64,000 nucleotides of DNA. Source: Lepidodermella squamata (taxonomy: Eukaryota; Animalia; Gastrotricha). A program made the translations under genes and the position numbers. This document shows, in pieces, positions 16,763-45,041 of the stretch (position 1 is the first letter of the stretch; each line of letters begins with the position of its first letter). The DNA lies in contig JBLDXI010000029.1 in the NCBI GenBank assembly GCA_047495785.1, positions 1,612,001 through 1,676,000 of the forward strand, given 5' to 3'. The notes below the pieces were generated by a model, which was given only the letters and a program-made list of their open reading frames with translations, was not told the DNA's origin and ran no database searches.

Positions 16763-18716
16763 ATGTTCCTATTTATCACCCCTAAGGCGTCTCTACTAGC
16801 CGAGTCGACTCTTAATTTACTCGTGAATCAGAAGCAACAACAGCAAAATAGCGAAGAAATCCCGTCGATAGCCGCCGGCATAGCTTCGATGGCTCGTTTC
16901 ACGGACGCCGATATGTTTCCTAATTCTTACGACGGTGACGACGAGGAGGAGGACTGGATTGAAGACGAGTCGCCTAAAACTGCGAAAACAGAGTTGAAAG
17001 CGCCTGGTGATTTAGCGAGTCAAATGCTGGCATTGACGCCGGTTGGTCGGCGGCGAACTCTGCGAAAAAAGCCGCTGACAAGTGCGATAAGTACGACATT
17101 TTCGCTAGCTGATACTCTATCGCTGGATTCTAGCAATTTTTCATCAATGGCGCCGATAGTTGTCGGCGGCAAAAAATGGACATGCCGGTATGGTTCGTTT
17201 TATAAAAAATTTCTCGAGAAAAATAAACCAAGATCAGGATATTAATTTATCAATGGCGGCAAGAACATCGCTAAGCATCGAGTGCCCGGACAGTGCACAA
17301 TTTTGATATTAATATTGAGGCCCACACATCTTATACAGTGCATAAAGTTTTATTAACCTGGAGAAAAGTCTCGTGCTTAATTGCCACGTGCGCGACTCAG
17401 TTTCTTTTTTAATCGTTTATGGGATAAATCAGCTTTTCGATGATCAATGTATTTAGGTACTTGTTTTAGTTTATTTGCAATATCTGAATCGAATTTTTGT
17501 TTGAAAGGCCATTTTTGGGGTAAAAATAAAAAAAAATGCGGGTCTCAATAGCCGATTTTTTGGAATTACGAATTTGTTTGGATCCTCCCCATAACTGTTT
17601 ATTTCAACTTCCCAGTAAATTCAGGTGTGCATTTTTCAATATTTTCCTCCAATACTGATCGAAGACTCAATCGGAAAAATCGCTGATTTGTGAAACCGAT
17701 TCTAATTTTTGATATCGGCTCAGCTCACTCTAGTATATTGTGACCCTTGACCCCTAATAGAGCATTAATTTAACCTGAATTTGGACGAGCCTTAATTTTT
17801 CAATATTTGTTTGATTTGTTTGAATTATTTTGAATATTTGAATTAGTTCATATTAATCATATTTTTTAATTTCGAGTGAAAGTTTTGAAAAAATCATAAC
17901 TTTCGTATTTTCAGATTGTCGATTTCGTCGATGCTGCCAGGCGACGCGAGCCTGCTTGTCCTTCGCGAGACCTTTGAAATAATCAAGCGAAATGCCGATT
18001 CTGTCTCAATTCAAGCCATGCGAGCCCTGTTACAGCGCCTGCCATCGGCCGCCGAAAAATTCGCTAAAGCTGGCAAGATAAAATACATTGACGACGATTG
18101 TAAGTTTCTAGAAAAACACAACTTCAATTTTAGACACCCGATTTTTTCAATTTCAATTTTTCAAAATTGATTTGAAATTGAAAAATTAAAAAACTTGTAT
18201 TAGAAAATTTTGGAATTTAATTTTAAATTTAATTTTAAAATTTCTAACTTCAACTTCAAAATTTAATTTCTTATTTTATGTTTTCAAATTTTTTTATCAT
18301 TTTTAGGGGAGCTTATTAATCACGGGCGTGCGTTTCTCGGCGCTATTGAGAAGTGTATATCCCGAGCTAAAGACGTCAAAGCCCTGAAAAACTACCTATC
18401 AAACCTCGGCCAAATGCATAGCCGAGCCGGTGTTAGATCGACGGAAATACCCGTTGCGCTTCACTTCTTCGAGTCAGCCATACTCGCGTATCTACGACCC
18501 TTTCACCTTCACCAAGAACCGAGCGATAACCCGAGCGGTAAAGTACCTACTATCAGCACTTCCTCAGTTCCGAACGGGCCTAGGTACTCGGATGAAACGG
18601 GCGTTCCGAGCGAGAATCTGGAATATCAAAACCGGTCGTCTTGTTTCGTATGCACAACTTGGCGAAACTTTTTCGATCTCATCAACATTTTACTTGTCAC
18701 TGATATTAAGGAGTGA
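16763..18716 (+). CDS. Globin G1 (long acidic/Ser-rich N-extension; E7 His, F8 His; HxH...CxxC); start uncertain
   Basis: Spliced (introns ~17188-17914 and ~18099-18307): LLVLRETFEIIKRNADSVSIQAMRALLQRLPSAAEKF...WELINHGRAFLGAIEKCISRAKDVKALKNYLSNLGQMHSRAGV...FFESAILAYLRPFHLH...CFVCTTWRNFFDLI. The A-H helix pattern of a 3/3 globin is recognisable. Confidence 0.85.
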
Positions 18717-19336
18717 AAAAGTCTTTAAATAAATAAACCCGGTGCAGTAATTGTTTTGGGCGATGAATAATCGAATTGTATGCGCGTCATTGGGTTGAGA
18801 TTTCGATCCCGCTTATAGGTTTATTTTTTGTCTCGGAATTATTGATGCCTAGATTCTACTGATTGGATATAAGCCTTAATGAGCGGCCGCAATCGCCTTC
18901 CTTGCGTAAATTTTACGCTTTGATATCTGCAAAATATTAAATTATCACGATCTAAAATAGCGTTGCAATATGAAATTTGACCTGCATGAAAAGATCACGC
19001 GCATAAAGACGCGACAGTAAATCAATGCCGCCAGAAAGGACAAAAGCTTGTTTCTCGCATATGAAAATTATATAACGATGATGTATTTTTCCTGTTTTGA
19101 AAGCTCGATGCTATAATAAAAATCATCGATGCTATTTTTGACGCCCACAAATTGGACTTCGTAATTGTTGTCCCCCCCGGATTTTTGAACCCCTGGATTG
19201 AAACATTTCCCTTGAATTCCACGATCATTTTCTGTTTATTAGCCAACTGAAATAGGCATTTTCGGTTTTTCGGTTCTCGTTAGATTCTGGGAAATTGTAA
19301 TCATATTAGAATTTTAACATTTTGAAAGATTTATAG

Positions 19337-20733
19337 ATGAACGGAATGAGAGCCTCGCTGACCGTTTCCGATGTGCTGAATCGGCACCACATTGGCCGGG
19401 GGAATCATCAATTCTGCTTATCCGATGAGGACATTAAAATGCTCCGCGAATCATTCGAAAAAATCAAACCACATGCAAGTGAAATAGGAACTCGAGCTTT
19501 ACAACAGTTAGTCATTTGCATAATAATATTTTCGAATTTACTTGAATATTTAGGAGGAAATTTTTCCTAAAAATTTAGCCAGTCAAAATTTTTTTGAGGA
19601 ATTTTCCGAATTTTGACATTATTCCTTATATTTGCCTGTTCAGCTCATTGTTAATCATCAAAGTTCTCAATTTCCATGTTCTCTTAAGAATTTTAAATAT
19701 TTATCATTTTTCGACCGTTTGAATCTTTGATTTTTCCGATATTTCGAGACTCAAAAGATTTAGAACGCTGAATCGACCTAAAAACAAAAAAAACTAGATT
19801 GAAACGCTTTCTGAAGTTTCATGTCTCTCAATGAATCAAATGTTTTTTAATTTTTTCTCAATTATTTTAATTTTTTTTATTTTACTCCTTATTCCTATCC
19901 GATGACCGATATCGGCCGATATCGATTTCCCATCTCGATCAAAAATCAAAAATCAAGATAAATTTAAAAAAAATTAAAAAATTAAAATTAAAATTCTATT
20001 GCAATGGATCAAGAGAGACAACAGTTTAAAATCAACAAAAGTCGGTTGTCGCGATATTGCCTATTTACCTTGAAAAAAATCCAATTGAAATCTAATTTAT
20101 GCGAATTTGTAATTTTTTTAAATTTTCAGAATAATCGAGCGAAGTCCGGCGACCTTGGAAATATTTCAAAACGGCCCAAATCGTCGCATCAAAACCGCCG
20201 ATGCTTGGGAGCTGCAGGGCGTTGGCGTGACCATTCTATCAAGCATAGAACGCTGCGTCCTCCGGCTACAACAGCCAATCAAACTCGAAGAGTACATCCG
20301 GCAAATCGTCGATCTTCACGCGCGAGTGTTCAAAGTCAACGTCGACGAGCTAACATTCGGCCTCGACGTGTTTCAAAGCGTAATTCTCGAATTTCTCGAC
20401 GTTCAACATGGCCACCAAAAAGATGACAGCCTGCTGAGCTCGCCCAGCAGTGAATTAACCGTACCAAGTCCCGTACTGTACGACCGGCCGATAACGATGA
20501 GCTTAACGCCAACGCTGCAGCCTAAAAATAGCTCGAGGAGTAGGAGGCCGTCGCGCCGAGCTTCCGCTTTCGACGTGGAATTGGAGATGTTGCAGGTCAG
20601 TAGGAAGCGCAGCAGTGAAGCGTGTCGAATCTGTTCGCTGTGGAAGCACTTTTTCCAGGCCATTTCGAACCACATGCAGCAATGCGCAATGGCTATAAAG
20701 GACGATAATAACACGGCTGTTAACTCTCATTAA
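19337..20733 (+). CDS. Globin G2 (E7 Val, F8 His; HGH...CRIC with ~69-aa GH insert)
   Basis: LSDEDIKMLRESFEKIKPHASEIGTRALQ | phase-2 intron ~19507-20129 | IIERSPATLEIF...WELQGVGVTILSSIERCV...YIRQIVDLHARVFKV...CRICSLWKHFF. Confidence 0.85.
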
Positions 20734-20742
20734 GCACCAAGT

Positions 20743-20965
20743 TACCGTAACGAGGGGTCAACTTACAACCTAATAATCAGGGGCTAAAGCTGCACGAAAA
20801 GATGCGTTTTAAATTGCTAAAAAATCTGGAAAAAATGCGAAAAATTCCAAATTTTACAGGAAATCAGGAATCACCTTGCTAGGACTAAGGTTGAAATTTC
20901 GGACTTTTTCGAGTGATTGCTGATTTTTAAACAGGTTTCGTCCGAAGTTACCCCTCGTTACGGTG
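20743..20965. mobile_element. MITE immediately 3' of the G2 stop codon
   Basis: Inverted termini ACCGTAACGAGGGGTCAACTT / AAGTTACCCCTCGTTACGGT. Confidence 0.7.
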
Positions 20966-21249
20966 ATTGAAGAAAATATTAAAAAATTATCAATTTCACA
21001 AGCACGTGACCTAGTTGAGTTAATAAACGAATTTAGGATTACATTGAGCGCGTTGTTTAATTAACTTGGTTTTTCCCACGATATATTCTGTTATTTTTAG
21101 TAAATCTCTCCTGTGTGCGGCCGATAATTGATATTATTGCTGTGATTATTGAAGCCGCACGTGATGCGAAAAATCCGGCGCAGGGTTTATTTGGATTCAT
21201 GCCTACACTTTTGAGACAGTTTTTTTCGATTATATTCTTCGATTTTTTA

Positions 21250-22163
21250 ATGGGTGCTGGATGCTCTTTGCCGGCGCTAGTTGTGCGGCAGGTGACGTGG
21301 CGCCGCCACCCTGACCCATTTTTCAGCGTTAATGAAATATGGCTTTTACGCAGCAGTTATATTTTGATTAAACGAGATAGCGGCAATCAACGGTTTGGAT
21401 TCGATCGCGAAAAATTATTCAAACTATTTATTCGTAATTTTACAGAATTATCGATGAAATTCCCGGAGCTATGGCTGTTATCCTCGGCAAAACTTATCAG
21501 CCTGGCTCGAAAGAGGTTTGGGAAATTGAGTTAATGGCTCAAGGTAAATTTTGCAATACCTCAATTTTCGTTCATTTTAACTGTTAAAATTTTTCCAAAT
21601 TTTAAAAATTTTTGTTCGACTGAAAACTTTGCGCTAAATTTCGAAATTTTAATTTTAATTTTTTTAAATTTTCCTATATTTATACAGTAATTATTTTTTG
21701 CTTTTGATCGATTTTTACTGCTCCAAAATATCTGAATTTCATTTTTATCATGAATTTTTTTAATTATTTCAAAAATACAGGATTGATATTTCTGAGCGGA
21801 ATCGAAAGAGCCTTGCTCTTAGTCGACGAGCCCTATTTACTGACGGCATTCGTCCATCAATTGGTTCGCAATCACTCTAAACGATTCAAAATTCCTATCG
21901 ACATGCTAAAAATTGCCTTGGAGACTTTCCGAACAGCTGTCATGGTCTACCTGCAAACAAAACACCACATCCACTATGCGGATAGTGCAAATTTCGTCGA
22001 GAAATTAACCGAAAAATTAGAATCGCAAGAAATTGATTACTTCAGTGAAAAAACGTGCAAAATATGCGCGGCTTGGAGGCATTTTCTAGACACCCTGATC
22101 GGCCTAATTGTTACTAGGCTATTAACCAAATGCAAGCTGCCCTATTGTTGCGATGATTCATAA
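21250..22163 (+). CDS. Globin G3 (MGAGCS N-terminus; E7 Gln, F8 His; HxH...CKIC; apparently shortened B helix)
   Basis: MGAGCS...FSVNEIWLLRSSYILIKRDSGNQR | IIDEIPGAMAVI...ELMAQG | LIFLSGIERAL...FVHQLVRNHSKRFKI...KHHIH...CKICAAWRHFL; introns ~21392-21445 and ~21544-21780. Confidence 0.8.
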
Positions 22164-23242
22164 TAAAATATTATCCCATCAAACCGCATTTTTTCTCATC
22201 TCACAGCGTGAATAAAATGTTCACGTATTCATACTTGTTCTCATTGTATAATAGATTTTTTGTTGAGTGGTACAAAGTGATTTTTCCACGCCGAAATGTA
22301 TAAACAAATGAGATGAAACCGTTGCATCCGTGTTTTTTGCCCTCAGCAGATAACGTTATTATTTTCATAGTACATCCAGCGTATCCAGGTATACATAGAT
22401 GGAAATACCATCGCCTACCTATATTTTTCGAAAAATTTGATTTTTTTTACTACTTTTTCGAAATTTTCAGCCCAGACGTAGGATGCGAGTTTTCGCGTTG
22501 GCGTTTACGCTAAAAATCAGGCGAGATTTTCTTTTTGTCTACGATAATGACATTACAGGGCGTAAATAGGGCGTAACTCTGTCGCACGAGGTTCGATTTT
22601 TGTGCCGCCGGCCGGGATTTTCGAAAAATAAAATTAACGCTATAAAATCCACACTCGAGCCGCTCGAGTTTAATATAATTTACGCGCAATCTATCGCATT
22701 TTTTACAATAAAAAAATTGTGACTTTTCAATTTTACCACAGGCATATGTCCCAATCATTTTATAGTCCTTTTTCAGGCCTGGACAGAATAACATGTCCAT
22801 GCTTTTCATGATTCTTCATCTATCCCTCGGGGCATGAAATGATCGCTGTATTTTTTTCAAAAATTCTCGTTTTGTTTTAAAATTAATGCAAAATTTACTC
22901 TCTTGCTCTACTAGTGTGGCTGGCGTTTATTTTAGAGTCTCATCTGATGAAACGAACACTAGCGGCGCCTATTCAGAGATCGTCACTTTGCATTTTTTCC
23001 TTCCTCGCGCGCGCATCAATTTAGCGCCGCCGTTTATAGCCCAGATCCAGGCAATATTATAAGAGATACGAGTTCGCAATCATGATGATTTTTTCCCCGC
23101 TGCAATCAGTCTCTTAGGACTTTATAAAAATTCAGCCGCAATTTTTAGCCAATCAGCATATAAGTCTAGACTTTCATTTATCTATTGATGTATAGATTTC
23201 GTGGGGAATTTCTTAATGCTGAATGCTGAATGCTGAAATTCG

Positions 23243-24701
23243 ATGGGTAATTCTGCCAGAAAACCTGTTGAAGAAAACGGCTCCGCTGGCGGTGGAGATG
23301 TGAAGCAGAAAATGGCCTTATCGCTTCAACTCAGCGAAGCAAGTGCGAAGTCAATAGCTGCTGCCTCAACCTTTGAATGGTCTCAAGAGGAACTCAATAC
23401 GTTAGCCGATAGTTTCGCCTATGTTAAACAGAACTGCCACAAGGTTGCGCTCAAGGCCGTTATCAGGTAAAATTCGCGTTTTTCTAGTTTTTTCTTTGGA
23501 TTTTTTGGGTTAATTTTTTATATAGGATGGTTGATACAATGCCTGACACGGCTGGTGCGTTGGAAATCGGCACCAAAAATACTGGCGAGTCATTTGGGCT
23601 GATGAATCAAGGCCTCATTTTCCTTACAGGTAAGGTATTCTAGAAACAAGAAAGCTCCTGCAGCGTATTACCCATTTACAGTCAATGAACAGCGTTTTTT
23701 TTGACCAAAATTGCTGGAATTTTTAGGAGAGCGCTCTATTTCTTTAAAAATGAACGCATGAATTTTTTTAAAAATTTCTGATCTTAATTTATAAATATTA
23801 TTACAGATTTTAATTTTTTTCAATTCTGCTCTATACATTTTAAGAATTAAATTAATAAAAAATTCAAACATGTGAAATTTCAATTTTTTTTAAATTTTCA
23901 TGCTGTCCGCTAAGGTTGAAATTCCCCAATTTTGTTCCCCAAATTAACTGAAATCTAAGCGGAAGATTAGGAATAAATTTGCTATATTGCTGAAATCAAT
24001 GTATTCAATTGTTACTATGGTAGGATTGGAAAGCATAAAATCACACAACTTCAGTTTTCTTTATTCTTTTCGAATCAAAATTTGAATTTTACAATTTAGC
24101 AAGCATTTCATATTTAGCCTATCTAAAGCATTGCGCAATTGTCCTGAGCTAATATGTCGCGACGCAAAAAAAATATTTTTTCTAATTTTACGAATTGTTT
24201 TTATCTGGAATTGTTTATCACTCGGAAAAATTAGGCAGTTCAATTTTTTCAAAAATATTTTTGTTTTTCGTTCAAGGTATAGAAAAGTGCATCGAGCGGG
24301 CTAATGATCCTGCCAAACTGCGAGCTTATGCCAAGCATCTAAACTCGATACACAGTAAACAGCACCAGCTGAAGCTGCATCACATGGTCGGCGGGCTGAA
24401 GGCGTTCGAGGACGTCATTCTCGAGTGCATCCAAACCGGATACCAGCACAAACCGCCCCGCCGGCAAAGTTCGGCCATGACCATTCATTTGATGCAGCAA
24501 CACCCGTCTCAACGGCCGCGGCGGGTGAGCATAGTTGGCGAGCAACAGCCTTTGCAGTTACTCGGGGCCGAGCACGTGGCTATTTGTGCGATTTGCAAAG
24601 TTTGGATCAAGTTCTTCCACTTGTTATACGTGACTTTTGACCCTAAAAACGGATTGGTTAACAAGGAATTGATGGCTAATGCTGATTCAGCTCGATATTA
24701 A
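23243..24701 (+). CDS. Globin G4 (MGNS N-terminus; E7 Gln, F8 His; CAIC)
   Basis: WSQEELNTLADSFAYVKQNCHKVALKAVIR | MVDTMPDTAGAL...LMNQGLIFLTG | IEKCIERANDPAKLRAYAKHLNSIHSKQH...EHVAICAICKVWIKFF. Confidence 0.85.
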
Positions 24702-25133
24702 AATTAATTTTACACTCTACCCTCAACAATTCTTCTCCAATGACATTGTTCGAAAATAAAATGGGATTTATTCTCACTTACTCCTCATCATTTACTATTT
24801 TTGTTTCATTAGCCAACGAAGGCCTGTTTTCAAAAAAATTCTGAGATGTACCGAATTTTTTTTAATTTATTGAAGTTTTTTCAAAATTCGATTGGGAAAA
24901 TCTTACGCCGGTACCAGATTTCATTTAATTCAATACCTAAACATTAAAGACAGTATTCGAATTCTTCACCACCATCTATATTCCAACCAACGATAAATAA
25001 CCAATACTTAGGTATTATTAAGAAATATCACCTATACTGAAGTTAATTAATTCATATCTCTGTGTCTTAAAGGCAATGTTACTAAGAATTATGTAACGCA
25101 GACCACCAATAAATCGGTATCTCTCTCGTTATT

Positions 25134-25220
25134 CGGGTAAGGGTTAGGGTTAAGGTTAGGGCTGGGGTTGGGGTTGGAGTTGGGGTTAGGTTAAGGTTAG
25201 GTTAGGATTGAAGGCTGGGA
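25134..25220 (+). repeat. Degenerate telomere-like (TTAGGG/TTAGG/TTGGGG) tract; a second microsatellite (GGATATA/GGCTATA)n lies at ~25519-25561
   Basis: gggtaagggttagggttaaggttagggctggggttggggttggagttggggttaggttaaggttaggttagg. Confidence 0.7.
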
Positions 25221-26148: not shown

Positions 26149-26780
26149 ATGGGGTCGAATTGTTCGCAGATAACAACAAAGCTTACTGTTATCTCTGGTC
26201 CGTCAGTCATTACGCAAGAGGAGTCTCAGTTGATTCAGGAGAACTTCGAAGCCATGAATAAGCATAGCCACGAAATCGCTCTGATGTGTTACGAAAGGTA
26301 AATAACTTTTCACCATTCAAACAAATGTATCTAACTCAAGCATTCAGGATTCTAGCTGAGATACCGGAAACGGCTAACGTTTTGAAAATGGCTGGTAAAG
26401 CAGCATCTACCGAGAATGAGCTGATGAATCAAGGCCTGATTATGTTGAAAGGTTATTCATTCCAATATAGATTCGACCCCTTATCAACTTTTTTCATTTT
26501 AGGAATTGAAAAATTTGTTAAGCTCTCGAGCGATCGTTATCTTATGTTCGAAGCAGCTGGCCGGCTAACGGCGTCGCATTCCGAACGGTTCGGGTTAACT
26601 GCCCACCGAATGTCACGGGCCATTCAAGCGATTCAGGAAGTCTTCATTCAGGAGGCAATGATGCATTGCAGCCATGATGAAGAAATGACGCGAACGGCTT
26701 GGAAACGCTTTTTCCGCGAACTCAACTACATATTCAGCTCGATGGCTCGCCGAAAGCCGAGCACAGTTGCAGGGCCGTAG
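26149..26780 (+). CDS. Globin G5 (MGSNCS; E7 Gln, F8 His)
   Basis: MGSNCSQ...ITQEESQLIQENFEAMNKHSHEIALMCYER | ILAEIPETANVL...ELMNQGLIMLKG | IEKFV...AGRLTASHSERFGL...TAWKRFFRELNYIF. Confidence 0.85.
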
Positions 26781-26901
26781 TAGCGAAATCAAAATCCAGT
26801 TATTAATCCTTCAATTTCGGGATAATCCTAAAACATGTTTGATCAAGTAGCTTTTGAATAAATCATCCTTTTTGAATCAGAAGAGTTGTAGCAGTTGGGA
26901 A

Positions 26902-27557
26902 ATGGGAGGATCTTGCTCACAGAATCTTGATGTCTCGGTGACGGAGCAAGATGTGCTTCAAGATCGAGCTGAAACTTCGATCAGCAAGGATGAAGCTAAT
27001 TTGCTGGCTAACAACTTTCGGGCGTTGTCAAAAAACTCTGAAGAGATAGGACTAGCCTGCGAAGAAGTGTTCGTTCCACTTGAAATTTCTGTCTTTAATT
27101 CTCCATCCTGTTATATAAAGGCTTATTGAAAGCATGGACGATGCTGCAGCTGTTTTAGGGGCTTCAAAAGGACCAGGGGGTTCAAAATCGGCCTTAATGG
27201 GACAGGGAGTGATTCTTCTCAAAGGAATAGGTCTCCTAGTAACTCTAGCGACCGATATGACGAAACTGAAAGCGACAATTGAACGACTATCCATCAAACA
27301 TTTGGACACTTATGGACTAACTCCAGTAAAGATGGCACAGGCCCTTCAGTGTAACCTTTTCTATTACAAGTTTTAACATTTCCTGTACTAGTTTTACAGG
27401 TTTTGAGGATATCTTCATCGAGCAAGCAATCAGCTATTGCCAATCAGACCGGGAGTTGACTCACTTTGCTTGGCGCAAGCTTTTCTGGGAAGCGAAAGTC
27501 CTGTTTGTCATTCAGTCAAAACGGATGAACATTGATCGCCAAAGTGATGCATTATGA
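26902..27557 (+). CDS. Globin G6 (MGGSCS; E7 Gln, F8 His)
   Basis: ISKDEANLLANNFRALSKNSEEIGLACEEV | LIESMDDAAAVL...LMGQGVILLKGIG...IERLSIKHLDTYGL...ALQ | CFEDIFIEQA...FAWRKLFWEAK...stop 27555-27557. Confidence 0.85.
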
Positions 27558-27818
27558 CCGTTTTCCTTGTCTTAATGTCACACCCCCCATATTATACCTT
27601 AGTTTCCGGGAATTAGGCTGCTAAATTTGTTACACAGCACCTTAGATCAATAAATCTATTTGTGTTTGACGTCATTTCAAGCAATTAGTGTAATTCTTCA
27701 ATAGGTGCGATGTTCCTTTCAGCCTACAGTAGTCCATAAAGCGTTTTTCCTTGCGCAGAATGTTTACTGTAAGTGCGATTAGGAGATGAAGCCTTTCCCT
27801 ACTTTCCAAACCCACGCA

Positions 27819-28510
27819 ATGGGAAGTGTCTGCACTAAAACGGTCACCAACAGTATTCCCCGCTACGACGAACACATGGCAGCCGAGCTGAGTCACGACG
27901 AAGCAGCTTTGCTATCCGAAAGCTATCGCTTAGCCTCGAGGCATTCCATGGACATTGGTTTTCTTTGTGAACAGAAGTATATTAGAAAGCATTTATGCAA
28001 CGTTTTGTCATCTTTCATCTTTCAGACTAGTGAAGTCAATGCCAGCTGCCGCTGAGATTCTGCAAGTTAACGGCGAATCGTCGCGAACACATCGTTTTTC
28101 CCTAATGGGCCAAGGCGTAATTCTCGTGAAGGGCATCGGCTACTTCGTAAACTCTGCTCGGAACCAGGAGAAAATGATCGACCACGTGGATAGAATTGCA
28201 ACGAGACACGCTGAAAGGTTCAGTTTGTCGCCGGAACAGATGGTCGAGGCGTTAGACTGTATCGAGGACACTTTCATTGAGCAGGTCATCAAACTGATAG
28301 ATGAAGAGTTCGCGGACAGTAAGTTCTCGTTTATCAAGGTTGAAATTGTTCTCAAGAATATTATTTTTTCAAGGTACTGCCATTGCGTGGAGGAAACTGT
28401 TTAGGGATGTTAAGAATCTCTTTACCGAGCAGTCGAAAACGCTGCTGATTGTGAGACCGCAAACATCTCGCAGTATGGTCAGCAACAGCAACGGAAGCTG
28501 GAAGGAATAG
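27819..28510 (+). CDS. Globin G7 (MGSVCT; E7 Gln, F8 His)
   Basis: LSHDEAALLSESYRLASRHSMDIGFLCEQK | LVKSMPAAAEIL...LMGQGVILVKGIGYFV...VDRIATRHAERFSL...CIEDTFIEQV | ...TAIAWRKLFRDVK. Confidence 0.85.
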
Positions 28511-29115
28511 CATTTTATTATCAATTTTACCTCAATAAAACAAAATGCGAAAATATCAGTCGCTTTGTGCTCAGCTAAAGCACTTCTTTCACTCCTTTGA
28601 TTGAAACGGAGAAAATAGGATTTTGGCTCCGAAAAAGGCACCGAAAGAAGAATCCGGTTATGGCCAGCAGCCAAAATGTGATCAAGGGGCTTATGCTGCA
28701 CTGCTGATCCTTTAAGATGAAAATAAGCCGAGTAACCTGAAATAAACTTGGCGGATGTCCAAGTCAGTCAAATATGAATTGCGCCATCCGTGCTATAGGA
28801 GTGTATACCGGCATCAGTCGATCAGTGATACATTGAGCATTCGAGAAGCATTTGAAAAGCGACAAATCGTGAATCGCAATCAAATAATTATCAGGGTTTA
28901 AATTGCGTTTAAGCTTTTTAATATGTTTGCACGTATCCTCTTTTGATTTAGACTCTGCAGAACAAGTATCAGCCGGAACCTCGATGGATAATTAATATTT
29001 CTATCAGGATTACAACGGTGCCTAGTATGCTCAAACATCGCATCTGGAACGTATCGCTTTTCAGTTCAAGAGCTGAAACAATTTATTCCTTCATTCCTAT
29101 CTGTGTATTTAAAAT

Positions 29116-29912
29116 ATGGGCGGAGTTTGCTCGTCGACTGTTGATCAAATTGTCGAGATGCAGAAGGAAATGTCCTCTGTGACCAACGGATCGATCATTT
29201 CGCCAAAGGAGGCGGTCATCTTACGGGATAATTCCATGGCACTATCTCGAAATACCTCAGAAATAGCTCCTGTAATTATCAAAATGTAGTTTTTTTCATT
29301 TTCCTAACTGCTTTTTCATTGATTTTTCCTTCTCCAGAATCATTCAAAGCGACATTTCGATGATAGGAATCTTCAAAGCAGCGGGTGTGGACTCGGATAA
29401 CCCGAAAGATCTATCCAGATTAGGGAAGGCCTTCATCGCAGGTTAGCGATGCCAAAAAATTGCCAATAAAGAATTTGTCTTTTGTCATAGGATTAGGATA
29501 TTTGGCAGAGCACGCGAATGATATTCCAAGGCTGCGGGGTTATTGTGATCGATTGGCACAAAGACATAACACTAAATTCGGCTTGTCTGGCCAAATTATG
29601 AGTCGTATGGTCCACGCATCCCGCGACGCTTTCATTAACGAAGCCCTTATATGCTGCCAATCTCAAAAAGACGAAGCCAAGATTGCCTGGCTCAAATTTT
29701 TCCAGATGATCGAAGGTATTTTCGCGTCGCAGACATCCCATTTAAATTCGGTCGAGAAGCCATTGATCCCAGACAAAACAGTCACGAAGGCCGAGTTAAT
29801 CCCGCCGCAGAAATCTAATGGTTCACTACGAGAGAAATCTGTCAGCGCAGTCTCCACAATTAACCACTCATATCGCTCGCCTAATAATAATGCAATGGTT
29901 AATGTTGAATAA
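29116..29912 (+). CDS. Globin G8 (MGGVCS; E7 Leu, F8 His; C-terminal extension)
   Basis: ISPKEAVILRDNSMALSRNTSEIAPVIIK | IIQSDISMIGIF...DLSRLGKAFIAG | LGYLAEHANDIPRLRGYCDRLAQRHNTKFGL...KIAWLKFFQMI. The first two exons are missing from the ORF track. Confidence 0.8.
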
Positions 29913-30007: not shown

Positions 30008-30710
30008 ATGATTCAAAACATGTTATCGAAAAGTCGAGAAATTGATGTTCCCCGGTCTAGCACCGGGGATTGTAGTCCATTCTCAGGAACACCACTTTCC
30101 TACACAAACAGCCCACCTAGTTTCGGAAACCGCCTTTCCTTGGAAGAACGGGAAATCGTTCTGTTACGGCACTCCTTCGCCGCAATGATACCACGCGCGT
30201 CTGATATCGGTCTTAAAATTGTGAAAGGGTGAGACAAATCGCTTGAAAAATGACATTTGAATCATGCAAATTCGAATCTTAGGATTTCTGAGCGAGTTCC
30301 AGAGGCACTTGACATTTTCTCAACATCTCCTAATAAAATTATCCGGAAAGGTTCGTTGCTTTCAATTTTCATCAGTAGGGTAACGATTTATTTCCGTAGG
30401 AGATAAATGGGAACTTATGTCTCATGGCAAAACCCTATTTTCCGCATTAGAGCGAGCTATACTCCGCCTAAATCGACCCGGTCCTCTTGCAGACTACATG
30501 AGAACTCTAACAGAGACGCATAAAGATCGTTACAGAGTCGTTGCTCCAATGATGGTCGTGGCGACAGAAGTTATGGAATTAGTTGTTCTCGACGAACTGG
30601 TAATAGCTCACGGCCACGACACAGAAAATGACCCGTGCGATGTTTGTCAATGCTGGCGCAAGTTTTTCGATTTGTTCCGCGGCCATCTAATGTCATCTCA
30701 AACCAAGTGA
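30008..30710 (+). CDS. Globin G9 (E7 His, F8 His; compact HGH-x6-CDVC motif)
   Basis: LEEREIVLLRHSFAAMIPRASDIGLKIVKG | ISERVPEALDIF...IRK | GDKWELMSHGKTLFSALERAI...YMRTLTETHKDRY...IAHGHDTENDPCDVCQCWRKFF. Confidence 0.85.
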
Positions 30711-30929: not shown

Positions 30930-32435
30930 ATGCATCCTAGAATAGGCTTGACCAAGTCTTGCCCGATTGCCGTGCCGAAATCCAAGACCAGTGAAATTTT
31001 CGTGCGCGTCCCAGATGGCGATGAGCTAAATGTACACAGCGCTCCGAAGAGCAGTGATGGCTTGTTAACAGTCAACGCTTTGCCTATGTGTCTCAAGGCC
31101 AAATCCTCCGATAATCATGGCGAATCGGCCTATTCAAGAAGTTACAGCGAATGTAGGGGCTCGTCGTTTCTCAATGCGGAGGCAAATCGATTTTTGGACA
31201 TTGCGAAGCAGCTGAATGGAGGGATTATGATTTCGATTAGTTCCCTCAACAATTCTATCGATGATAGCCCACCTGGAAATGAGTCGAATGGAGTGCGCTG
31301 CGACCAAGTTGACCTAATACTCGACGAAACCGAGACAGACGCTGTTTTGTCAATTTTCCGCGATGCGAAAATGAAACTTGAGGATTTAGCTAATGATAGC
31401 TTGAAAAAGTTTATTTTCTGATAAATCAACCGTTGCTAACGCTTTTTTCTCGCATAGGATGAAGTCTGACACAGTAGGCAATGGAGATGGTGAGTGGGAA
31501 CTACTAAGCCAGGACATTTCCTTCCTCGACGAAGTTTCGGGCTGTCATAAACATCCTACTCTTCGCGTCATTAGTCGTAGACGTGCTGTTCCTGGTTCGC
31601 TCGATCAAGCTTCCGGTCCGATGATCTACAAAATAGGCCATTTATCTGGCAACAAAGAAGATCTATCTTGCAAGAATTGCTATGATAAACGGAGCGAGAG
31701 CCTGCCGAATGAAAATATTGAAATACCGGAACTCAGATCATCGAGAAGATCATCCGGCAGGCCTCAGTTAGTCTCCCAGCAGTTCAGTTTCACCGAGCGA
31801 CGATCCTTAGCTCCGGAGAATTCGCTGGATGTGCTTCCACGTCAACTCAATCTACCAATGGCATTCTCAGAGAAGGAAATCTCCATCCTATGGGAAACCT
31901 TCAACTACGTAAAGCACGATGCCAGTGAAATTGGGCCGAAGGCTATTAAGAGAATCGCTGCCCTAGTTCCGGACACATTCAAGATAACTTCAGAAAATGG
32001 AGTGATTCAAGTAGGCGACGATCAATGGGGGAAAATCATGCAGCAAGGTTGGCTTGAAATCATTTCGTAACCTCCTCCTTAAATTTTTGAACATTGTCAG
32101 GTTTCACGTTTTTAAATGGAATTGAGCGATTTCTATTGCGACTCAAGCGCCCACCCGTTTTGCAGCGCTATATCAAGCAGCTGGCTGAGAGTCATGAAAA
32201 GAAATACGGCGTAGGTGTGGATAAGCTGACAAGTGCTCTGAACGTTTTCGGCACGTTGCTGATGGAGTATTTGCAAAAGAAACACTACCACGGCAGCAGT
32301 GCCGATTTTGATTTGACGATGATGAAACGCTTCACCGCTGATCACAGCCAGTGTGAAATTTGCTCGTCGTGGATAAAATTCATTGGATTTATCAGCCTTC
32401 AATTATCAGCTTGCACTAACGTGACTGAAAATTAG
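30930..32435 (+). CDS. Globin G10: long N-extension containing a vestigial half-globin, then a full globin (E7 Gln, F8 His; HYH...CEIC)
   Basis: Exons ~30930-31408, 31458-32047, 32101-32435. Full domain: FSEKEISILWETFNYVKHDASEIGPKAIKR...IMQQG|FTFLNGIERFL...YIKQLAESHEKKYGV...CEICSSWIKFI. Confidence 0.8.
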
Positions 32436-32851: not shown

Positions 32852-33008
32852 AGCGCCAAAACAACAACTATAAAGTTCGCTATGGAAAGTACGATCGACC
32901 CTTGAACGGAAGCCAAACTTACGATCAGTATGCTCGAACGTACTACATCATTACGCTGGGCTCATTCAAGTACGATCGAATGAGTCATTGAAATGGTTGT
33001 TTTGGCGC
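32852..33008. repeat. Small fold-back element
   Basis: GCGCCAAAACAAC ... GTTGTTTTGGCGC termini with internal repeated AGTACGATCG. Confidence 0.5.
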
Positions 33009-33647
33009 GTCTCTAGCGAGATATTGCTGCGCCGTGTTTTGATAGAAAATCTTACTGCCAGCCAGTTAGAACGGATAAGGTCTTTCGAAGATTCGCAGGC
33101 TTTTGTACTGATTACTTTCCTCTCATGATAAAATTCTCATACCAGGGTATTTATCGCAATTCGAGAAAGCGTGATTTCCCGCTGAATAAATTGTTTCTTT
33201 TTTTCTGCCGCAATTTTTTACATAATTCTATATAAGTATGCAACTATGCGAGCTTTTAATTTTACGCTGACGAAAGCAGGATGGTTATTTATCAATGCTA
33301 ATTTGATTCATATTTTGCATCGCTTATATAAAAGTAAACCCAGCTTATATATGTTCTACGAAACGGACCCATTTCCTTCGCTTCAATTCCGGATCCTATC
33401 GATGCGTTAAACGATCGCTTTCTGATATCTCTGGAACTCGAATTACAAGCCTGAAGAAGGAAACGCTAGAGCTCACTGATGTCGGGTAAACTTTCAGCGC
33501 ACTTTTTTAAACTATGCGAAATTCAAGAGCGCCCACTTACTCCAAGCAAATTATTGAGATCTCATTTCAAATTTAGAATTTAGAATTCGAATTTTCCGTA
33601 GATCTTATAATAATATATTATAATATTCACGTCTGCAAACGGTGGCA

Positions 33648-34785
33648 ATGTCAAAATTGGTAAGTAGGATTATTTCCCCGGCTTTAATTTGATATTGAGA
33701 AGTAATAATATTATCCTCTCCGGGGTGTGTTAAATTGATTTCCGTCTCATCCCACTTGCATCAGCGATGAATAATAATTGTCCTTAAACACTGCAAAACA
33801 GACCCCAGGGAGCAGCGAGGCGGAACCGCCGTCACGTTATTATCAGCAGAATCGGCAACGTCGGTCGTCTCATTCACATTTCTCAATTGGAATGAACATC
33901 GTCCGCAGGTTTAGCTCTTCCCTTCTGCCAGATCGCGCTGGCAATCACCGCGACTCGAGCGATAGTTTTACGATAAATGAAACAATCGCCGAGAAGCCGC
34001 TATCTCACAGCCTGGTTTCTACCACCCTGAGTTACGAAGGCCTCCTCCAGCAGAAGAATCTGGCCGTTCTACGGCGGAAAAGCAGTGGCGCGATGCCGAA
34101 CACCCCAACGTCTGATTTCAGCCTAGCGGGTAGTTCGGAATGCTGCACGGATGAGGATGATAACGACATGTTTCTCGACCTAATTCTGTCCAATGACGAA
34201 GTTCACCTGATTAAGGAAACGTTTCGCGAGGTTAAAGATCGGCGCGATGAAGTTGCACTATGTGGCGTTCAATGGTAAGTTTCAGGTCACATGCGTTTTG
34301 CTCTCAAATAGGAAATGTTTTTGTATGTCAATAGTGTTGCCGCCAGGATGCCACAGACGTTTCGTAAACTGCATATCAACCCGTCAACAGTGAGTCATCA
34401 TGAACTCATGCCATGCGACACCTGGGAGTTGCAGCAGTGCGGCGTCAACTACCTCAGCCTAATCGAGCGATGCATTCTCCGCCTTAACCGACCGCATCGA
34501 TTGAAAACGTACCTACTTGAGGCGAGTGTTGAGGAAGAGATGAATAACTCGGTCACATCCAGTGAATTCGCCCTGATAATCGCGTCGTTTGAAGAGGCGC
34601 TGATCACATTTTTCCGGGGTAGGAACCATAATATGGAGAAGTGCATCGAGGAAACGACCTTCTCCATGGAGACAGTTTCATCCTCATCAGGTTCGGATTC
34701 TACAACTGACAGTGAGATGATCGTTGCCGTCTGGACTAAATTCTTCCGTCTAATCTATTTCGCTCTATCGCTTAAAAGTAATTAA
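33648..34785 (+). CDS. Globin-fold protein G11 lacking the proximal His (F8 Glu; E7 Cys), with long Ser-rich N-extension
   Basis: Micro-exon MSKL (33648-33659) splices in frame to 33802. LSNDEVHLIKETFREVKDRRDEVALCGVQ | VAARMPQTF...WELQQCGVNYLSLIERCILRLNRPHRLKTYLLEASVEEE...VAVWTKFFRLI. Confidence 0.75.
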
Positions 34786-35150: not shown

Positions 35151-36120
35151 ATGGGGAAAGCGATTTCAACGATGAGCATTTCGGACCGAGACGGCTTTTT
35201 CGTTGCACGACATCACGATCACGGCATTGTAGCCGTTCAACACCACCTTAAAGCGAATCAAAGCGATTATGATATCGAGCGAAGGAGGAGGTCTATTCAG
35301 GTCGTGACGGCTTATGCGGAGAACAGTAGGAACCAGCGGAGATACACAGCTACAAGCGGCGATAAGCCTAGTGGCAGACCTGGGTCGAGACTTTTCTTAT
35401 CCACAAGTATTACGCCAAGCCCTGAAGAGATTGGAATACTTCAGAAAAGTATGGAACGGTGCAAAAAGCAAAGAGAAAGAATCGCGAATCGAGCAATTGC
35501 TGGGTGAGATTCTGTTCCAACTTTTAAAGAAGTAATTGCTATTTTTTCCAAAATTTTCCAGCTTCATACGGAATATGCCAGATGCGCCTGAGATGTTGGC
35601 TAGAGCAGCTAAAGCTGGAAATCGCAGGCTGGACCCTGCTGAGCTTACCCGTCGTGGGTTGATGATGTTTTCCGGGATAGAAAGATGTGTCTACGCCCTC
35701 GATAATTTGGACAAATTGCAGTCAATGGTCGCAGATTTCGCGGATCTCCACGCCCGCCATCAAGTCCCGGTTGAAGCAATCTCAATAGTCGCTGATCTAC
35801 TTGAGACGGAAATTCTCTTCGCCGTCAGAGGAATGCATGGTAAGAGCTGCCGGTTGATCTATCGCAAGACGACGCTTGACTCACTGGCTACTGCGGCGAT
35901 TTCGAACATCAGCATCGGACTGAAAGCTGCGTCTGTTAACAATTTGATCGACGAAAAGGCGACCGAGCATTTGACGGCGCGGCACCTGACGCCGCACAAT
36001 GACTGCATGGTTTGCAATGCTTGGCGTAAATTGTTCGACATTATTAACATTGTCATGATATCGCAGATGCTTTCCACGACTAAACTTGTAGCAGCTAAGA
36101 CGCTTTCTGCTGCTACCTAG
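35151..36120 (+). CDS. Globin G12 (MGKAIS; E7 Arg, F8 His; H..C...H..CMVC)
   Basis: PSPEEIGILQKSMERCKKQRERIANRAIAG | FIRNMPDAPEML...ELTRRGLMMFSGIERCV...VADFADLHARHQV...GMHGKSC...PHNDCMVCNAWRKLF. Confidence 0.85.
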
Positions 36121-39620: not shown

Positions 39621-42080
39621 GATCTATCCACCTTAATTTACTGGGGTAATTTTTCCTTGTAAAATGATCGAACTGATCGATGGCTATCTTCCTAGTTTCT
39701 GGCGGTTTGTACCTCCTGATGTGAGATGGTTACAAGTTCTCTATTTTGGGTTTGCCGCTTTCAAATTATTAAAACGGAGAGATTTCATAAACCCTGGACC
39801 TGTTTTCTATCTGGAACATGCAATAAAAATTGCGCTTCAAACCTTTTTCACCTTTCCCTTGTGACTTCATCTTGAGCAAAACTTTATTTGAAATTTGTGG
39901 AACCATGGGTTGTAACGTGGTATACGATTTCTAGCTTTCAAGATATCTGAAAGACTGGTACCAAGACATGGGAAAATCGAGAAGGCTGGGTTGCAATTTT
40001 AGCTTTTAGGTAGTCTCATAAAATGTTCTGCATCATCCACCGTATAAATTGGAAATAAGTTTCAAGTTTGAATTTTCTCGTCAAAATGTTGATTAAGAAA
40101 AAATGAAAATGATACAATGTTCTCTCGACTCTCGACGCTTGAATTCGTGTTTAGTTTTTCAGCGATTTTACAGGAGACTATTGGCGATATTTTACTAAAA
40201 GTTGCGTGTGCTGTGTGCTCGCGGTAATATGAATCAGGAATTCATTACTACAAAATTTAGAACTCATTTTTCGCGCGCACGTTTATCTTCTAAAATGAAG
40301 AAGAAATGCGGTAAAAAAAGTTTAACTGTGTGAGTGCGCGCGCCTAAAAACAGCCCGTGTGCTCTCAAATCTGCGCGCTGCAAGTCGAAAGGTGTATTAA
40401 ATGCGCGAGGTTGTGCGCGCGCTGCAAAAAAGCCCACACAAACACACACGCGCGCGCACTAACAAAAAGATTTATTCCCGCAATTTATTCCCCACTTCAT
40501 CCGTGGTCATGCTCAAGCATGCAACCTAGCCCAACCTTTCACGCTGAATCCGAATATCTTATCATTTTGTGAAATTAGTCTTGATTTTCTTTCATAATGA
40601 AAAAGGTTAGAATTTCTCCCAATTTCAAATATTCTATGGCCTTGTTGTAAGCTTGCTGTTGGACTCAGGAGAGCAATTTGTAGCAGTCAGTTGTTATAAA
40701 ACATGAATGTTCACCTCGCAGCTTGTTACTGGCAACTATATTGTGAATTGATTGAGACGCTAATACAGTGCTCCGCAAACCTTTTTCACCTCTGGCATTT
40801 TTGGCGGCCGAAAAGCCTTGCTTCGGCCGCAGTAACGAACAGGCCCTTCTCCGGTCGCACCGACATTGGCAATGTCCTTTCATCGGCCGCAAATTTTGTT
40901 TTTGCAAGCAACTTTTTTCCATGACCAATTTTCTTTCGCTTAGTTCTATGCGCTTAGTGAAGGCGGTAATTTACAGAGGCCTCAAGAGCGAACTTCAACC
41001 GCCTAAACCGACGTTTTGCCACAACTTGAGTCATCAGAAGCGAGCAAAAGAGGTTGCTTTTATTCGCGAGCAAAGCGAGCTTGAGCTAACGGTATTTCAC
41101 AGGAATATTTGCTGAGAATAGTCTAAAATAGACTGATTCGTCATGATCGAAGGAAACGGGTTAGCCAGCCGCATTCCAGCCATCATTCGAGAAAAGCTTC
41201 CCGGCCGCGATGAACTGCCCTGCCGACCTTCGAAAAAGGCTTCGAAAAAGGGGGTTGTAAACGGGACGTGCTACAATTGCGAGCATGCGACTTTATCGTT
41301 TCAAAGCAAGTTTTCAAGTGTTAAAATTGAGTAAAAATAAAAATAAATTTTTAATTTTTGAACTAAAGCCAACAGCTTTTCATCAAAATCGAGAACTTCA
41401 TCGTTCGATTGCGAGTTGAAATTTAGGTATTGAAATTTTAAAATGTTAGTTTTCTTCAAATCATGAATGATAGGAAATCGACAGTTACTTCGGCAATTTT
41501 CGTTGCTGAACTTCTCTCACTCGGCTATGTTTCGCCATTTTCTATCAAACATGCCCATCAAATGCCTCAGAAATGGAATTTCAAAAATTACGCGCAATTA
41601 TTTTTAAATCCGATTTTCAAAAATTGAATTAAAAATTAGGTCCGGGTAGCTATTGCGAGTACGAGGCCTTACTTTATTTTTTCAAAGGCCTTAAAAGGGG
41701 GGTTTGTAAACGGGCGGAAATAACGGTTATTTGAAGCTATTAGGTACGGAATATACGGTAATTGTGGTAAGCGCTTCTACACTCGCATCTCGCATCGCAA
41801 GCAAGGATGCTCAATAGAATTTAAAAGAATTCGTAGTAATTCAATGGTTTTGTCGAAATTAAAAATGATGGGGAAACGCGATGAAAACCGCAACGCCGCC
41901 TTATAGTATGGATACATACAGCAGCAATCAGCGTAAATCGCGTGGTTTTCTCCTATCATATCAGACGTAAGGTACGTATAACGTATAATAAAGCGCTGTG
42001 CTGCGCACACACGAGTTCTATCATAGGTAATTGCGTTTACCGTGAAATTCGAGTATTAGCCAATTTGGCGCGTTTGTCAT

Positions 42081-42395
42081 TAAATATCTTTTTAAATACG
42101 AGGGTGATGTAGTTATTTTTTCAGAATTCTGAATGGTTACGGTCTGTTTCAACTGGTTGATAAAAAATTGCTGCGTTTCACTGGCTGGTTTTTTCTTGAA
42201 AGGAGATTTTGTAGGAAAATATAGACTTTTGGCCAGATTTACGGGGTTTTCAATTAATATCTTTTTAATTTCGAGGATTATATAACTATTTTCTTCAGAA
42301 TTTTGAATGGTTGGGGCCTAGTTCAACTGGTTTACAAAGAATTTCTAGATTTTACAGGCTGGCATTTTCTTAAAACGAGAGTTTATAGGAAAATG
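42081..42395 (+). repeat. Diverged tandem duplication, ~174-bp period
   Basis: Both units contain aatatcttttta...cgagg...ttcagaatt(c/t)tgaatggtt...ttcaactggtt...ggctgg...taggaaaat. Confidence 0.7.
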
Positions 42396-44155
42396 TTGAT
42401 TGTACGCGATGTTCGAATTCGTCTTTCAGCTGCCAGTTTATTAATATTTCGTCTTTGAATAAAAATTCACTGTATGGAAAAGGTGACATGCACTGAAGAG
42501 AACAATCGACGAGAAAATGACATAGTTTTAACCTATGGTTCATGTTCCTCGGCGAATTAAGACAGTAAAGCGAGATTTTCAGTGTTCAAGTTGGAATCGG
42601 TGTAGCTAAGGGATTTCGTGGATGACTACTACATTTTTCCACTGAATATCAGTGCCAAGGACCTGTCAAATGGAACTAACGGTTGATCATTAACAATTGC
42701 TGGCTATATTATTCCGAATGAATAGAAATTGCTGTCGAATGTGAAAAAATGTATCCTGTTTTATAGAATTATGTGGCGATTGTAAATAATCTAGCCACAA
42801 GAATTTCTTTATCACCCAACATAATCAACCGTTTGGCCCTCGACTTCGATTCTAAGCGGAAAAATTTCATCATCATCCACGAAATTAAAATATTACACCG
42901 ATTCATTGCTTATCACTGTCAAACTTGAATTTCAATTAATTTTTTAGGAGGAGAATTGGTCATCGATTGGAACAATATCATATTAACGTAAATTGGTCCC
43001 TGCAGTGCCTCTCATTCTTCAAACAAGAGTGAATTTTCATCTTATGATGAAATACCAATTTATCGGCTGCTTAACGACGGACAAGAGCATCAAGCCAAGT
43101 CAGGTTTTCCCTCAAAAAACTGGTTTTCTGAAAAAACCAGCCGGCAGAAAATGAGCGAATCTCAGGCCGACTTTTAATGAAGGGCTAAGGCATAAGATTG
43201 TCTGACAACATATTAGCATCATCCACGAAAATCTAAAAAAATTTCAATGAAACCAAACCAAATTCGTTAGGGCTCGAAGTAAAAAAGTGGTACGGTAGTA
43301 CTCTTATGTGTGCGTAGTATATTCATAAACAGAACGCGCGCTTTGGCGCAGCGCATAATAGCATAAATGTTAGCGCGCGCTATAATACAATGAAATGTAT
43401 GGTCAATCGAAAGCAGTTATTATGCCGCAATGCCGATATATCAACGACATGGACTAACTTCAATTTCTTCAATCCGGAACTAATCCGGAAAATGCAGTTA
43501 ACATTGCAAGATTTCTATGTCAGCTATTCTCCAATATTCGGAAGTGAGAAAAAGTGACATGGGGCATAAATGAAGTAAGATTTTTCCGAAAACTGAGTGG
43601 CCACATAAGTGTCTGTAGTGCCCAACATGAAGTTTACGTCGTCTAATGCGGAAATTTATCGTTAGTCGCGTATGTTTTTTTCCGGGCTAAGATTTTGCAC
43701 GTCTGCCTAGATCCAGATTTGACGTTAAAAGTGTCTGTATGTTCGAATTTTGAAGGGCAAAAACCAATTTGATAGAGAAATTTATGGCGTAAGGAGTTAG
43801 TACATGTTCATTTTTCAAAGTTATGCAGAACTGATTATTAGGCCAAGGAACATCGTTCATTTGTTAACAAGGAAAATGAAAATTCTACTTTAGCTACACG
43901 TTCACATCGTACTGATTGATGTTCCGATTAAGCTCAAAAATTGCTGTTGATAATTACGTCATTCTTCCTCGTTCCGAACACTCATGCAGAAGATACTTGT
44001 AGGCGTTGACCTTAGTCTTGCTCATATCTTTTGCTTACCTACTAAATTAGCCCTAATTGGGCAGCAGAGGATGTTTCAGTGTCTAGATTTCCAACTCGCA
44101 TTCAAGTCTTATTAGTTTGTATTCTATCCTGAAAGACTATCTCATTTTCGACAGA

Positions 44156-45041
44156 ATGGGCTTGGTTGGCTCGGTTTTCCGTGATCGAGAGCGTAGCAGT
44201 GACATTCAAAAGCGGAGAATTCTCGCCGATCGCCAAGTCAGAAGCGCATTTGTCGCCCTGGAATACGCGAATCGCTTTCAAATCAACAGCGGCTACAAGG
44301 AAAAGCCACATCTTTTCATTTCCTCCCGACTGACCCCGACTCCAGAGGAAATCGACGTAATTCGACGAAGTTTCGAACGGATTAAGGGGCAGTCTGAGAA
44401 GATCTCATTGAATGTCATTCGAGGGTATGGAAAATCGATTTTACAACTTTTTAAATGTTTAGCTTTTGTTTACAGGCTTGTAATGCGTATGCCTCAAGCG
44501 AGTGCGATTTTTAGCACCCACGACCCCGCCGGCATTAAACGAGGTGAAACCTTGCGATTTGTCACTCGAGGCTACGTCATGCTCCACGGGCTGGAGCACT
44601 GCATACGGAATCTGGAGAATTTGGACCAGCTGCAGGTGAAAATAGCAGCGTTCGCGGAAACTCATGTCAGGTACAAAGTTCCAATCGAGTCGGTGCCTAT
44701 CGTTGCAGACAACTTTGAAACTGAAATTTTAATCGCATGTCGGGGACTGCACGATAAAACCTGCGCGCTGACATCCGCCAGCAATGCAAGAGCTAAGACT
44801 TGCGATGGAAACGGACACTCGGCATGGAAAATAAACAAGGCCGGCTTGAATCACAGCTCCACGTGCACTGAACAATTTGACGACCATTCAGTTTGCGTTT
44901 TGTGGTAAGCCTTGATTTGCTCATTTCAATTGCATTTACATCATGATTCATTACAGCACGGCATGGAGGAAATTCTTCGATCTCGTTAATATCGTCATGA
45001 TTTCGGAAATGCTCTGTCAGGTTAATGATCAGTCGCATTGA
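44156..45041 (+). CDS. Globin G13 (MGLVGS; E7 Arg, F8 His; H..C...H..CVLC); close paralogue of G12
   Basis: PTPEEIDVIRRSFERIKGQSEKISLNVIRG | LVMRMPQASAIF...FVTRGYVMLHGLEHCI...IAAFAETHVRYKV...GLHDKTC...DHSVCVLC | TAWRKFFDLVNIVMISEM. The last intron splits the second Cys codon. Confidence 0.85.

Follow-up and report, generated by a model that had tools for sequence, protein, structure and literature searches.

The 64,000-nt window analyzed here (contig JBLDXI010000029.1 of Lepidodermella squamata; all coordinates are positions within this stretch) consists of compact DNA with a G+C content of about 42% and introns of about 50 nt. It contains 14 globin-like genes, G1 to G14, all of which are located on the plus strand between 17.9 and 49.4 kb and have 2–3 modelled exons each. 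In eight of these genes (G1–G4, G9, G10, G12, and G13), a CxxC-x-x-W motif at the start of helix H is paired with His, or with His and Cys, at the end of helix G, a combination that we refer to as the clasp. We consider the odds to be slightly in favor (a probability of about 0.55) of the clasp being a structural Zn(II) site of the Cys2His2 or Cys3His type, which would connect the C-terminal end of helix G with the beginning of helix H and close a disordered loop at its base. From the aligned sequences and the predicted structures, we infer a spatial convergence of the four residues, the binding of a metal by them and the identity of this metal as zinc.

According to the proposed mechanism, the GH corner would have been turned into a four-ligand metal site in a clade of lineage-specific, mostly N-acylated cytosolic globins. 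The first ligand would be a His in the final turn of helix G, and the second a His or Cys located 2–4 residues further along or moved to just ahead of helix H, while the third and fourth would be contributed by the Cys-x-x-Cys that spans the N-cap and the first turn of helix H. Together, the four residues would chelate a single Zn(II), thereby joining the two helix ends and shutting a disordered loop, rich in Ser and Asn, at its base; the loop ranges from 5 to 89 residues across the family. In this way, the globin fold would retain its G-H hairpin in spite of the insert, and the loop would be displayed for other uses.

The clasp motif in the globin array

The presence of CxxC-x2-W ahead of helix H in eight paralogues, as claimed in an earlier sequence-only reading of the window, was borne out. 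In total, nine occurrences of C..C..W were identified in the six-frame translation of the window, as compared to 1.5 ± 1.1 expected from block-shuffled sequence (n = 100, maximum 5). Seven of the nine are on the plus strand, at equivalent sites in the last exons of seven globin genes, and start at positions 18642 (CFVC), 20623 (CRIC), 22056 (CKIC), 24585 (CAIC), 30636 (CDVC), 32352 (CEIC), and 36004 (CMVC). The eighth motif, CVLC in G13, is genuine but interrupted by a phase-2 intron of 52 nt (44905–44956, TG/GTAAG...TTACAG/C) within the codon for the second Cys. None of the other seven clasp genes has an intron at this position.

The pairing of the CxxC with His at the end of helix G, or with His plus Cys in G12 and G13, was likewise recovered with the motifs that had been listed. 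In G1 (17889..18713), for which two exons were modelled and the N-terminus was not found, HLH is located at 18504–18512, CFVC at 18642–18653 and the Trp at 18660–18662, with a spacer of 43 amino acids (aa) between the G end and the CxxC. The corresponding motifs in G2 (19337..20730) are HGH (20407–20415) and CRIC (20623–20634), separated by 69 aa, and those in G3 (21250..22160, N-terminus MGAGCS) are HHIH (21963–21974) and CKIC (22056–22067), separated by 27 aa. G4 (23243..24698, N-terminus MGNSAR) has YQH (24441–24449), a spacer of 45 aa and CAIC (24585–24596), with an additional His 4 residues ahead of the latter. The minimal case is G9 (30008..30707), with a spacer of 6 aa between HGH (30609–30617) and CDVC (30636–30647), while in G10 (31405..32432) 20 aa separate HYH (32283–32291) from CEIC (32352–32363). 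Helix G ends with H-GKS-C (35836–35850) in G12 (35151..36117, N-terminus MGKAIS) and with H-DKT-C (44750–44764) in G13 (44156..45038, N-terminus MGLVGS), followed after 51 and 43 aa by CMVC (36004–36015) and CVLC (44894–44957), respectively. The range of 6 to about 69 aa and the variation between paralogues thus agree with the earlier description of the spacer as unconserved, but this does not hold for the G4 orthologue pair, in which the spacer is as conserved as the core (38% versus 41% identity, with the R-R-x-S sites described below included).

The remaining six genes are without the CxxC. G5–G8 (26149..29909, with starts at 26149, 26902, 27819, and 29116) have a short GH corner and MG..C acylation-type N-termini, G11 (33892..34782) has E-M-I-V at the CxxC position, and G14 (approximately 48442..49357, N-terminus MGQSAL), which lies beyond the 18505–44965 interval of the earlier reading, belongs to the orthogroup of the related protein P0005. 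The claim that G5–G8 and G14 lack the HxH as well as the CxxC was correct for the latter but too strong for the two combined, in that ligand-type residues are found at the G end of G5 (H-C-S-H), G8 (C-C), and G6 (Y-C). The Trp and the FF that follow the CxxC are features of the family at large, also of its members without a clasp, and are therefore not part of the clasp; the Trp is aligned in cytoglobin too.

Globin identity, relatives, and origin of the clasp

With the Pfam Globin model (PF00042, cut-off 22 bits), the exons of the window scored 13–20 bits, which is below the cut-off, and there was no match at E ≤ 0.1 to four full-length intronless clasp globins among the relatives (P0024, P0027, P0014, and P0003). 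Since the model is blind to full-length members, routine annotation would overlook the clade. A family profile compared to the PDB matched 192 globin sequences at E ≤ 0.01, with cytoglobin on top (2.4e-9) and the proximal His aligned, and a half-domain profile gave a globin match at 9e-7. The AlphaFold model of P0024 has a predicted local distance difference test score (pLDDT) of 93–98 in the domain, and Foldseek searches with this model retrieved globins only, with template modelling (TM) scores of 0.74–0.75 to Lucina HbII/III, followed by cytoglobin and Spisula nerve haemoglobin. Judged by these profiles and the predicted structure, the family consists of true, albeit very divergent, 3-on-3 globins.

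The proximal His (F8) was identified in 13 of the 14 paralogues in the window. It is missing in G11, as well as in the relatives P0011, which is the orthologue of G11 but retains a CKTC, and P0045; the position is occupied by Glu or Ala in these three proteins. The distal E7 residue is variable across the family (H, Q, V, R, L, or C). Two of the three members without the proximal His (P0011 and P0045) have kept the clasp, which argues that the clasp works independently of haem, and the suggestion that it couples haem to redox or sulfide sensing was accordingly left without support. G11, P0011, and P0045 are candidate haem-free "pseudo-globins"; G11 is still covered by reads from a probable RNA run, X2.

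An exhaustive hidden Markov model (HMM) search of 1.84 billion representative proteins at a threshold of E ≤ 1e-3 yielded 47 relatives, of which 19 contain exactly one CxxCxxW. The clasp-bearing matches were all derived from ENA metagenome assemblies and represent protein clusters of 1–4 members. On these contigs, the clasp globins are also arranged in tandem, with orthologues of G1 and G2 adjoining on L001–L004, and a gene for 122 aa is located directly upstream of P0024 on L005. The WIPI3 protein of the relative shares about 50% identity with its counterparts across bilaterians, with lophotrochozoans ranking first. The named relatives are all clasp-less and comprise a multi-domain globin from Biomphalaria, a protein that from its accession we take to be a sea-urchin multi-domain globin, and a clam "globin CTT-W-like" protein. 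No nematode was found among the 30 of the 47 matches that were looked up. A homologue search with the last exon of G12 gave no matches, and one with the family alignment gave six matches but no new clasp member. No relatives were confirmed by tblastn in two scans of JGI metagenome contigs with H-helix and E-helix motif patterns, and ESM-Atlas structure searches recovered only unrelated bacterial folds with TM scores below 0.45. In a feature search, clusters of globins from nematodes and arthropods came up at 0.89–0.90, which we regard solely as a lead.

A maximum-likelihood tree was inferred from 50 members (26 clasp and 24 clasp-less), with the alignment columns of the motif and of the insert left out. 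Every clasp member was placed in one clade of 42, with a support of 97 in the Shimodaira-Hasegawa-like approximate likelihood ratio test (SH-aLRT) of a quick tree, and clasp-less lineages were nested inside this clade; G5–G8 formed a clade that was sister to G4/P0007. The presence or absence of the clasp changes nine times on the best tree, and at least five of these changes are forced by strongly supported branches. We read this as a single origin followed by at least four losses, since it is unlikely that a motif of four residues would have arisen repeatedly at one place.

Nine of the 14 genes encode a Met-Gly N-terminus (starts at 21250, 23243, 26149, 26902, 27819, 29116, 35151, 44156, and approximately 48442), with a Cys at positions 4–6 in about six of the nine (MGAGCS, MGSNCS, MGGSCS, MGSVCT, MGGVCS, and similar). 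Met-Gly without a nearby Cys is found in G4, G12, G13, and G14, and for G1, G2, G9, G10, and G11 there is either no Met-Gly or the start was not found. The MG..C motif is the myristoylation/palmitoylation pattern of membrane-bound globins, and no signal peptides were identified in the family proteins, from which we infer that the proteins reside on the cytosolic face of membranes and are mostly N-acylated. Sites of the type R-R-x-S, which is recognizable as a basophilic-kinase pattern, are located in the inserts of G2 (20416–20622, Ser/Pro/Arg-rich, with RRPS and RRAS) and G4 (24450–24584, with RRQS and RRVS). They recur in the orthologue of G2, P0009 (RRHS), where the insert is otherwise only 18% identical, and in the orthologue of G4, P0007 (RRQS and RRGS), suggesting that the GH loop may be phospho-regulated.

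A candidate zinc site and its alternatives

The case for one four-ligand site was built on 26 members with a CxxC, namely the eight paralogues from the window and 18 further representative proteins. At least two His/Cys residues are present among the eight residues at the G end in 20 of the 26, as compared to 5 of the 24 clasp-less relatives, whereas the chance expectation is about 6%, as estimated from the His+Cys content of 5.3% in the family. Once the six residues before the CxxC were counted, 25 of the 26 members had at least four ligands, and where the G end has a single ligand, the extra His/Cys is usually located 1–5 residues ahead of the CxxC. The second ligand at the G end interchanges between His and Cys (H-x-H, such as HGH and HDH, H-x-C, and H-x3-C), and the Cys pair is all-or-none, with 26 CC, two C-x-x-H (P0028 and P0031), and no single Cys. 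The four His/Cys positions are kept across members that share only about 20–30% identity. In orthologue pairs, the inserts are 18–24% and the cores 35–51% identical while the ligands are invariant; G1 and its orthologue P0003 are 48% identical. The variants listed for the last exon of G9 in other runs were all synonymous, one being in the codon for a clasp His and another in the codon for a clasp Cys.

In the inserts themselves, Ser (14.8%) and Asn are abundant, and Phe, Ile, and Trp are scarce. An insert of at least 20 aa was found in 19 of the 26 clasp members as compared to 2 of the 24 others, namely G11, which has lost the clasp, and P0031, which has the C-x-x-H variant. In the AlphaFold model of P0024, in which the spacer is 5 aa and the GH corner has a pLDDT of 95–96, H168 marks the end of helix G, while helix H is N-capped by C176 and has C179 within the first turn. 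The same helix-end layout was found when the last exon of G2 was modelled, with a pLDDT of 53–60 for the insert of 69 aa. The proposal of a His2Cys2-type zinc site or a thiol switch thus gained from the conserved His and Cys, their interchange, the all-or-none Cys pair and the helix-end placement in two models, with the metal itself being a prediction.

A number of observations weigh against the zinc site. The second-ligand position is loose (+2, +3, +4, or relocated), P0045 provides only three ligands, and the compensation by a ligand ahead of the CxxC was not significant (p 0.16). Pairs of His/Cys are still found at the G end of the clasp-less G5, G8, P0020, and P0022, and phylogenetically independent contrasts (n = 5) were in the right direction with a sign-test p of 0.25–1. 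The models were read at the level of helix-end placement, and a tetrahedral arrangement of the ligands is a prediction. Finally, only a few ENA metagenome assemblies, which may represent one organism, account for all relatives with a clasp beyond the window, and the breadth of the family is therefore small.

An unlikely alternative is a metal-free thiol switch, in which a reversible CxxC disulfide at the N-terminus of helix H would alter the GH loop or the ligand affinity, in the manner of a thioredoxin-type helix N-cap or of the neuroglobin Cys pair, with the His residues only tuning the thiol pKa. The CxxC at the helix N-cap in both models and the joint presence of the two Cys would agree with such a switch, and membrane-bound globins such as GLB-12 do work in redox signalling (PMC4686822). 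However, the switch leaves both the conserved His/Cys pair 6–90 residues upstream and the His-Cys interchange unexplained, and the C-x-x-H of P0028 and P0031 is incapable of forming a disulfide but still capable of binding a metal. The predicted cytosolic location also speaks against a switch. Cytosolic CxxC motifs more commonly bind a metal than form a disulfide, and because the proteins are predicted to reside in this reducing compartment, a metal site is the more likely of the two.

We are equally doubtful that there is no intramolecular site at all and that the residues instead form a surface for docking or dimerization, such as a zinc hook between molecules, or have merely been inherited and serve no present function. 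Such an explanation would be in line with the non-significant independent contrasts and with the clasp-less members that retain His/Cys at the G end. It is at odds with the invariance of the residues at about 20–30% identity next to a randomized insert, with the two Cys always being lost jointly and with the ligand-codon variants being synonymous.

Even less probable is a redox-active centre, either a mononuclear one with Fe or Cu(I) or an Fe-S cluster between two chains, that would serve as an electron relay to the haem. The ligand set would be identical to that of the zinc site, and an electron-transfer role has been proposed for hexacoordinate membrane-bound invertebrate globins (PMC3106018). 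The GH corner, however, is far from the haem by textbook globin geometry, members without the proximal His retain the site, and the motif is neither of the Rieske (C-x-H...C-x-x-H) nor of the rubredoxin type (two CxxC), both of which were rejected on motif form. Attachment of a c-type haem (CXXCH) was dismissed because no His follows the second Cys (the residues being T, S, A, K, Q, S, N, and T in the eight genes), and a thioredoxin-like CxxC oxidoreductase because the fold is that of a globin, with the helix N-cap position alone in common.

Known systems, gene array, and significance

Zinc sites at helix ends are well known from classical Cys2His2 fingers, from treble clefs with a CxxC at the helix N-terminus and from TAZ-type sites with H-x3-C...C-x-C between helices. 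The putative clasp site has the same ligand chemistry and placement, with the CxxC at the N-cap and first turn and further ligands ending the preceding element, and the H-x3-C...C-x2-C of G12 and G13 resembles the HCCC site of TAZ. However, these known sites belong to folds unrelated to the globins, the ligands of the clasp come in the reverse order to those of Cys2His2 fingers, and the spacer of 5–89 aa is disordered, so that the likeness is one of resemblance and not of membership. Among globins, extracellular chains from annelids and siboglinids (2d2m, 3wct) were the top sequence-profile matches for helices E–G, and a Cys located six residues ahead of the H-helix Trp in 3wct_C is aligned to the first Cys of the clasp. 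In the annelid extracellular globins, this Cys forms a disulfide, and these chains differ from the clasp family in that they are extracellular and have neither a CxxC nor His partners.

Six globins in C. elegans have long GH inserts of 17–40 aa, with interhelical extensions of 40 aa in F49E2.4, 32 aa in R102.9, and 21 aa in GLB-12 (PMC2228317). As in the clasp family, the fold tolerates an insert exactly in the GH corner, but no zinc or Cys/His motif is mentioned in the text of that paper, on which this comparison is based. Globin X (PMC3176823) and GLB-12 (PMC4686822) share with the clasp family the MG..C N-terminus and the architecture of one globin domain plus extensions, and in both cases the role is probably non-respiratory, but no GH-corner His/Cys clasp or zinc is reported for them, and the comparison is one of likeness only, as our tree was built without globin X sequences. 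The CD7-D5 switch of neuroglobin (PMC3535368) resembles the clasp in being a conserved interhelical Cys pair that alters the behaviour of an intracellular globin, but it is located in the CD loop and forms a disulfide without His partners, whereas the clasp has four ligand-type residues in the GH corner. Literature searches on globin CxxC and zinc, on zinc binding by the GH loop or helix H, on zinc at the GH corner, and on chaetognath globins returned nothing relevant and no earlier description of the motif, which agrees with the original impression that it is not a feature familiar from canonical globins. To our knowledge, the GH-corner His/Cys clasp is thus novel for globins, while N-acylated N-termini and long GH inserts were already known. 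We know of no natural globin with a built-in structural metal site besides the haem, and none was found in these searches either.

Splice sites were modelled for 13 of the 14 globin-like genes, all but G14, with introns at 30229–30282 and 30351–30399 in G9 and at 35504–35561 in G12. The reads of run X2, which is probably RNA, were confined to the predicted exons of G9–G12, with empty intergenic spacers, and GT..AG joints were identified in G9 (30227>30282 and 30348>30398) and G11 (34273>34334), along with loose ends at the intron borders in G12. Because the coverage is restricted to exons, with such joints and loose ends, G9–G12 are probably transcribed and spliced as modelled. Introns within helix E were modelled at two nearby positions in G3 (21543/21781), G4 (23629/24277), G5 (26451/26503), and G8 (29441/29491), ahead of "GIE" in G4 and G5 and ahead of "GLIFLSG" in G3. 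No E-helix intron is present in G2, G9, G10, G12, and G13, and intron positions vary from one subfamily to another within the array.

Several other features were identified in the window. A cluster of ankyrin-repeat genes is located on the minus strand (6576–15403) and contains two near-duplicate pairs (6576–7457/12578–13768 and 7637–8209/14795–15403); on contig L001 of the relative, the globins are likewise flanked by ankyrin genes. Between G10 and G11, a segment at 32950–33149 has a depth of 3893 in run X1, which is about 40-fold that of the contig surroundings (about 100), with many loose ends, and represents a high-copy repeat. Downstream of G13, a trypsin-like C-terminal exon on the minus strand (45193–45558) has G-G-S-P-L where G-D-S-G-G-P is expected and is possibly part of a non-catalytic serine-protease homologue. 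Exons of two tandem SLC6-type transporter copies were found on the plus strand (53447–56883), and a reverse-transcriptase fragment of a long interspersed nuclear element (LINE)-like element on the minus strand (59449–60012).

If the clasp binds zinc, it would illustrate how a compact helical fold can accommodate a long stretch of disorder, namely through a staple at the base of the insert, and this would provide a ready design principle for engineered globins. The family would, if our reading is true, represent a hidden clade of globins beyond the standard domain models that has expanded to dozens of copies within a single, poorly known lineage of animals. That many copies are predicted to be tethered to membranes, and that some are without the haem ligand, points to signalling rather than to oxygen carriage. 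More speculatively, and with a low probability in our view, the proteins may be self-contained redox-signalling globins, in which a zinc-thiolate clasp would keep a phosphorylatable loop shut until oxidants or NO, produced by their own haem, as in GLB-12, or of external origin, release the zinc, open the loop and alter membrane signalling. A clasp globin of this kind would, if real, add a mechanistically new class to a protein fold that is among the best studied of all.

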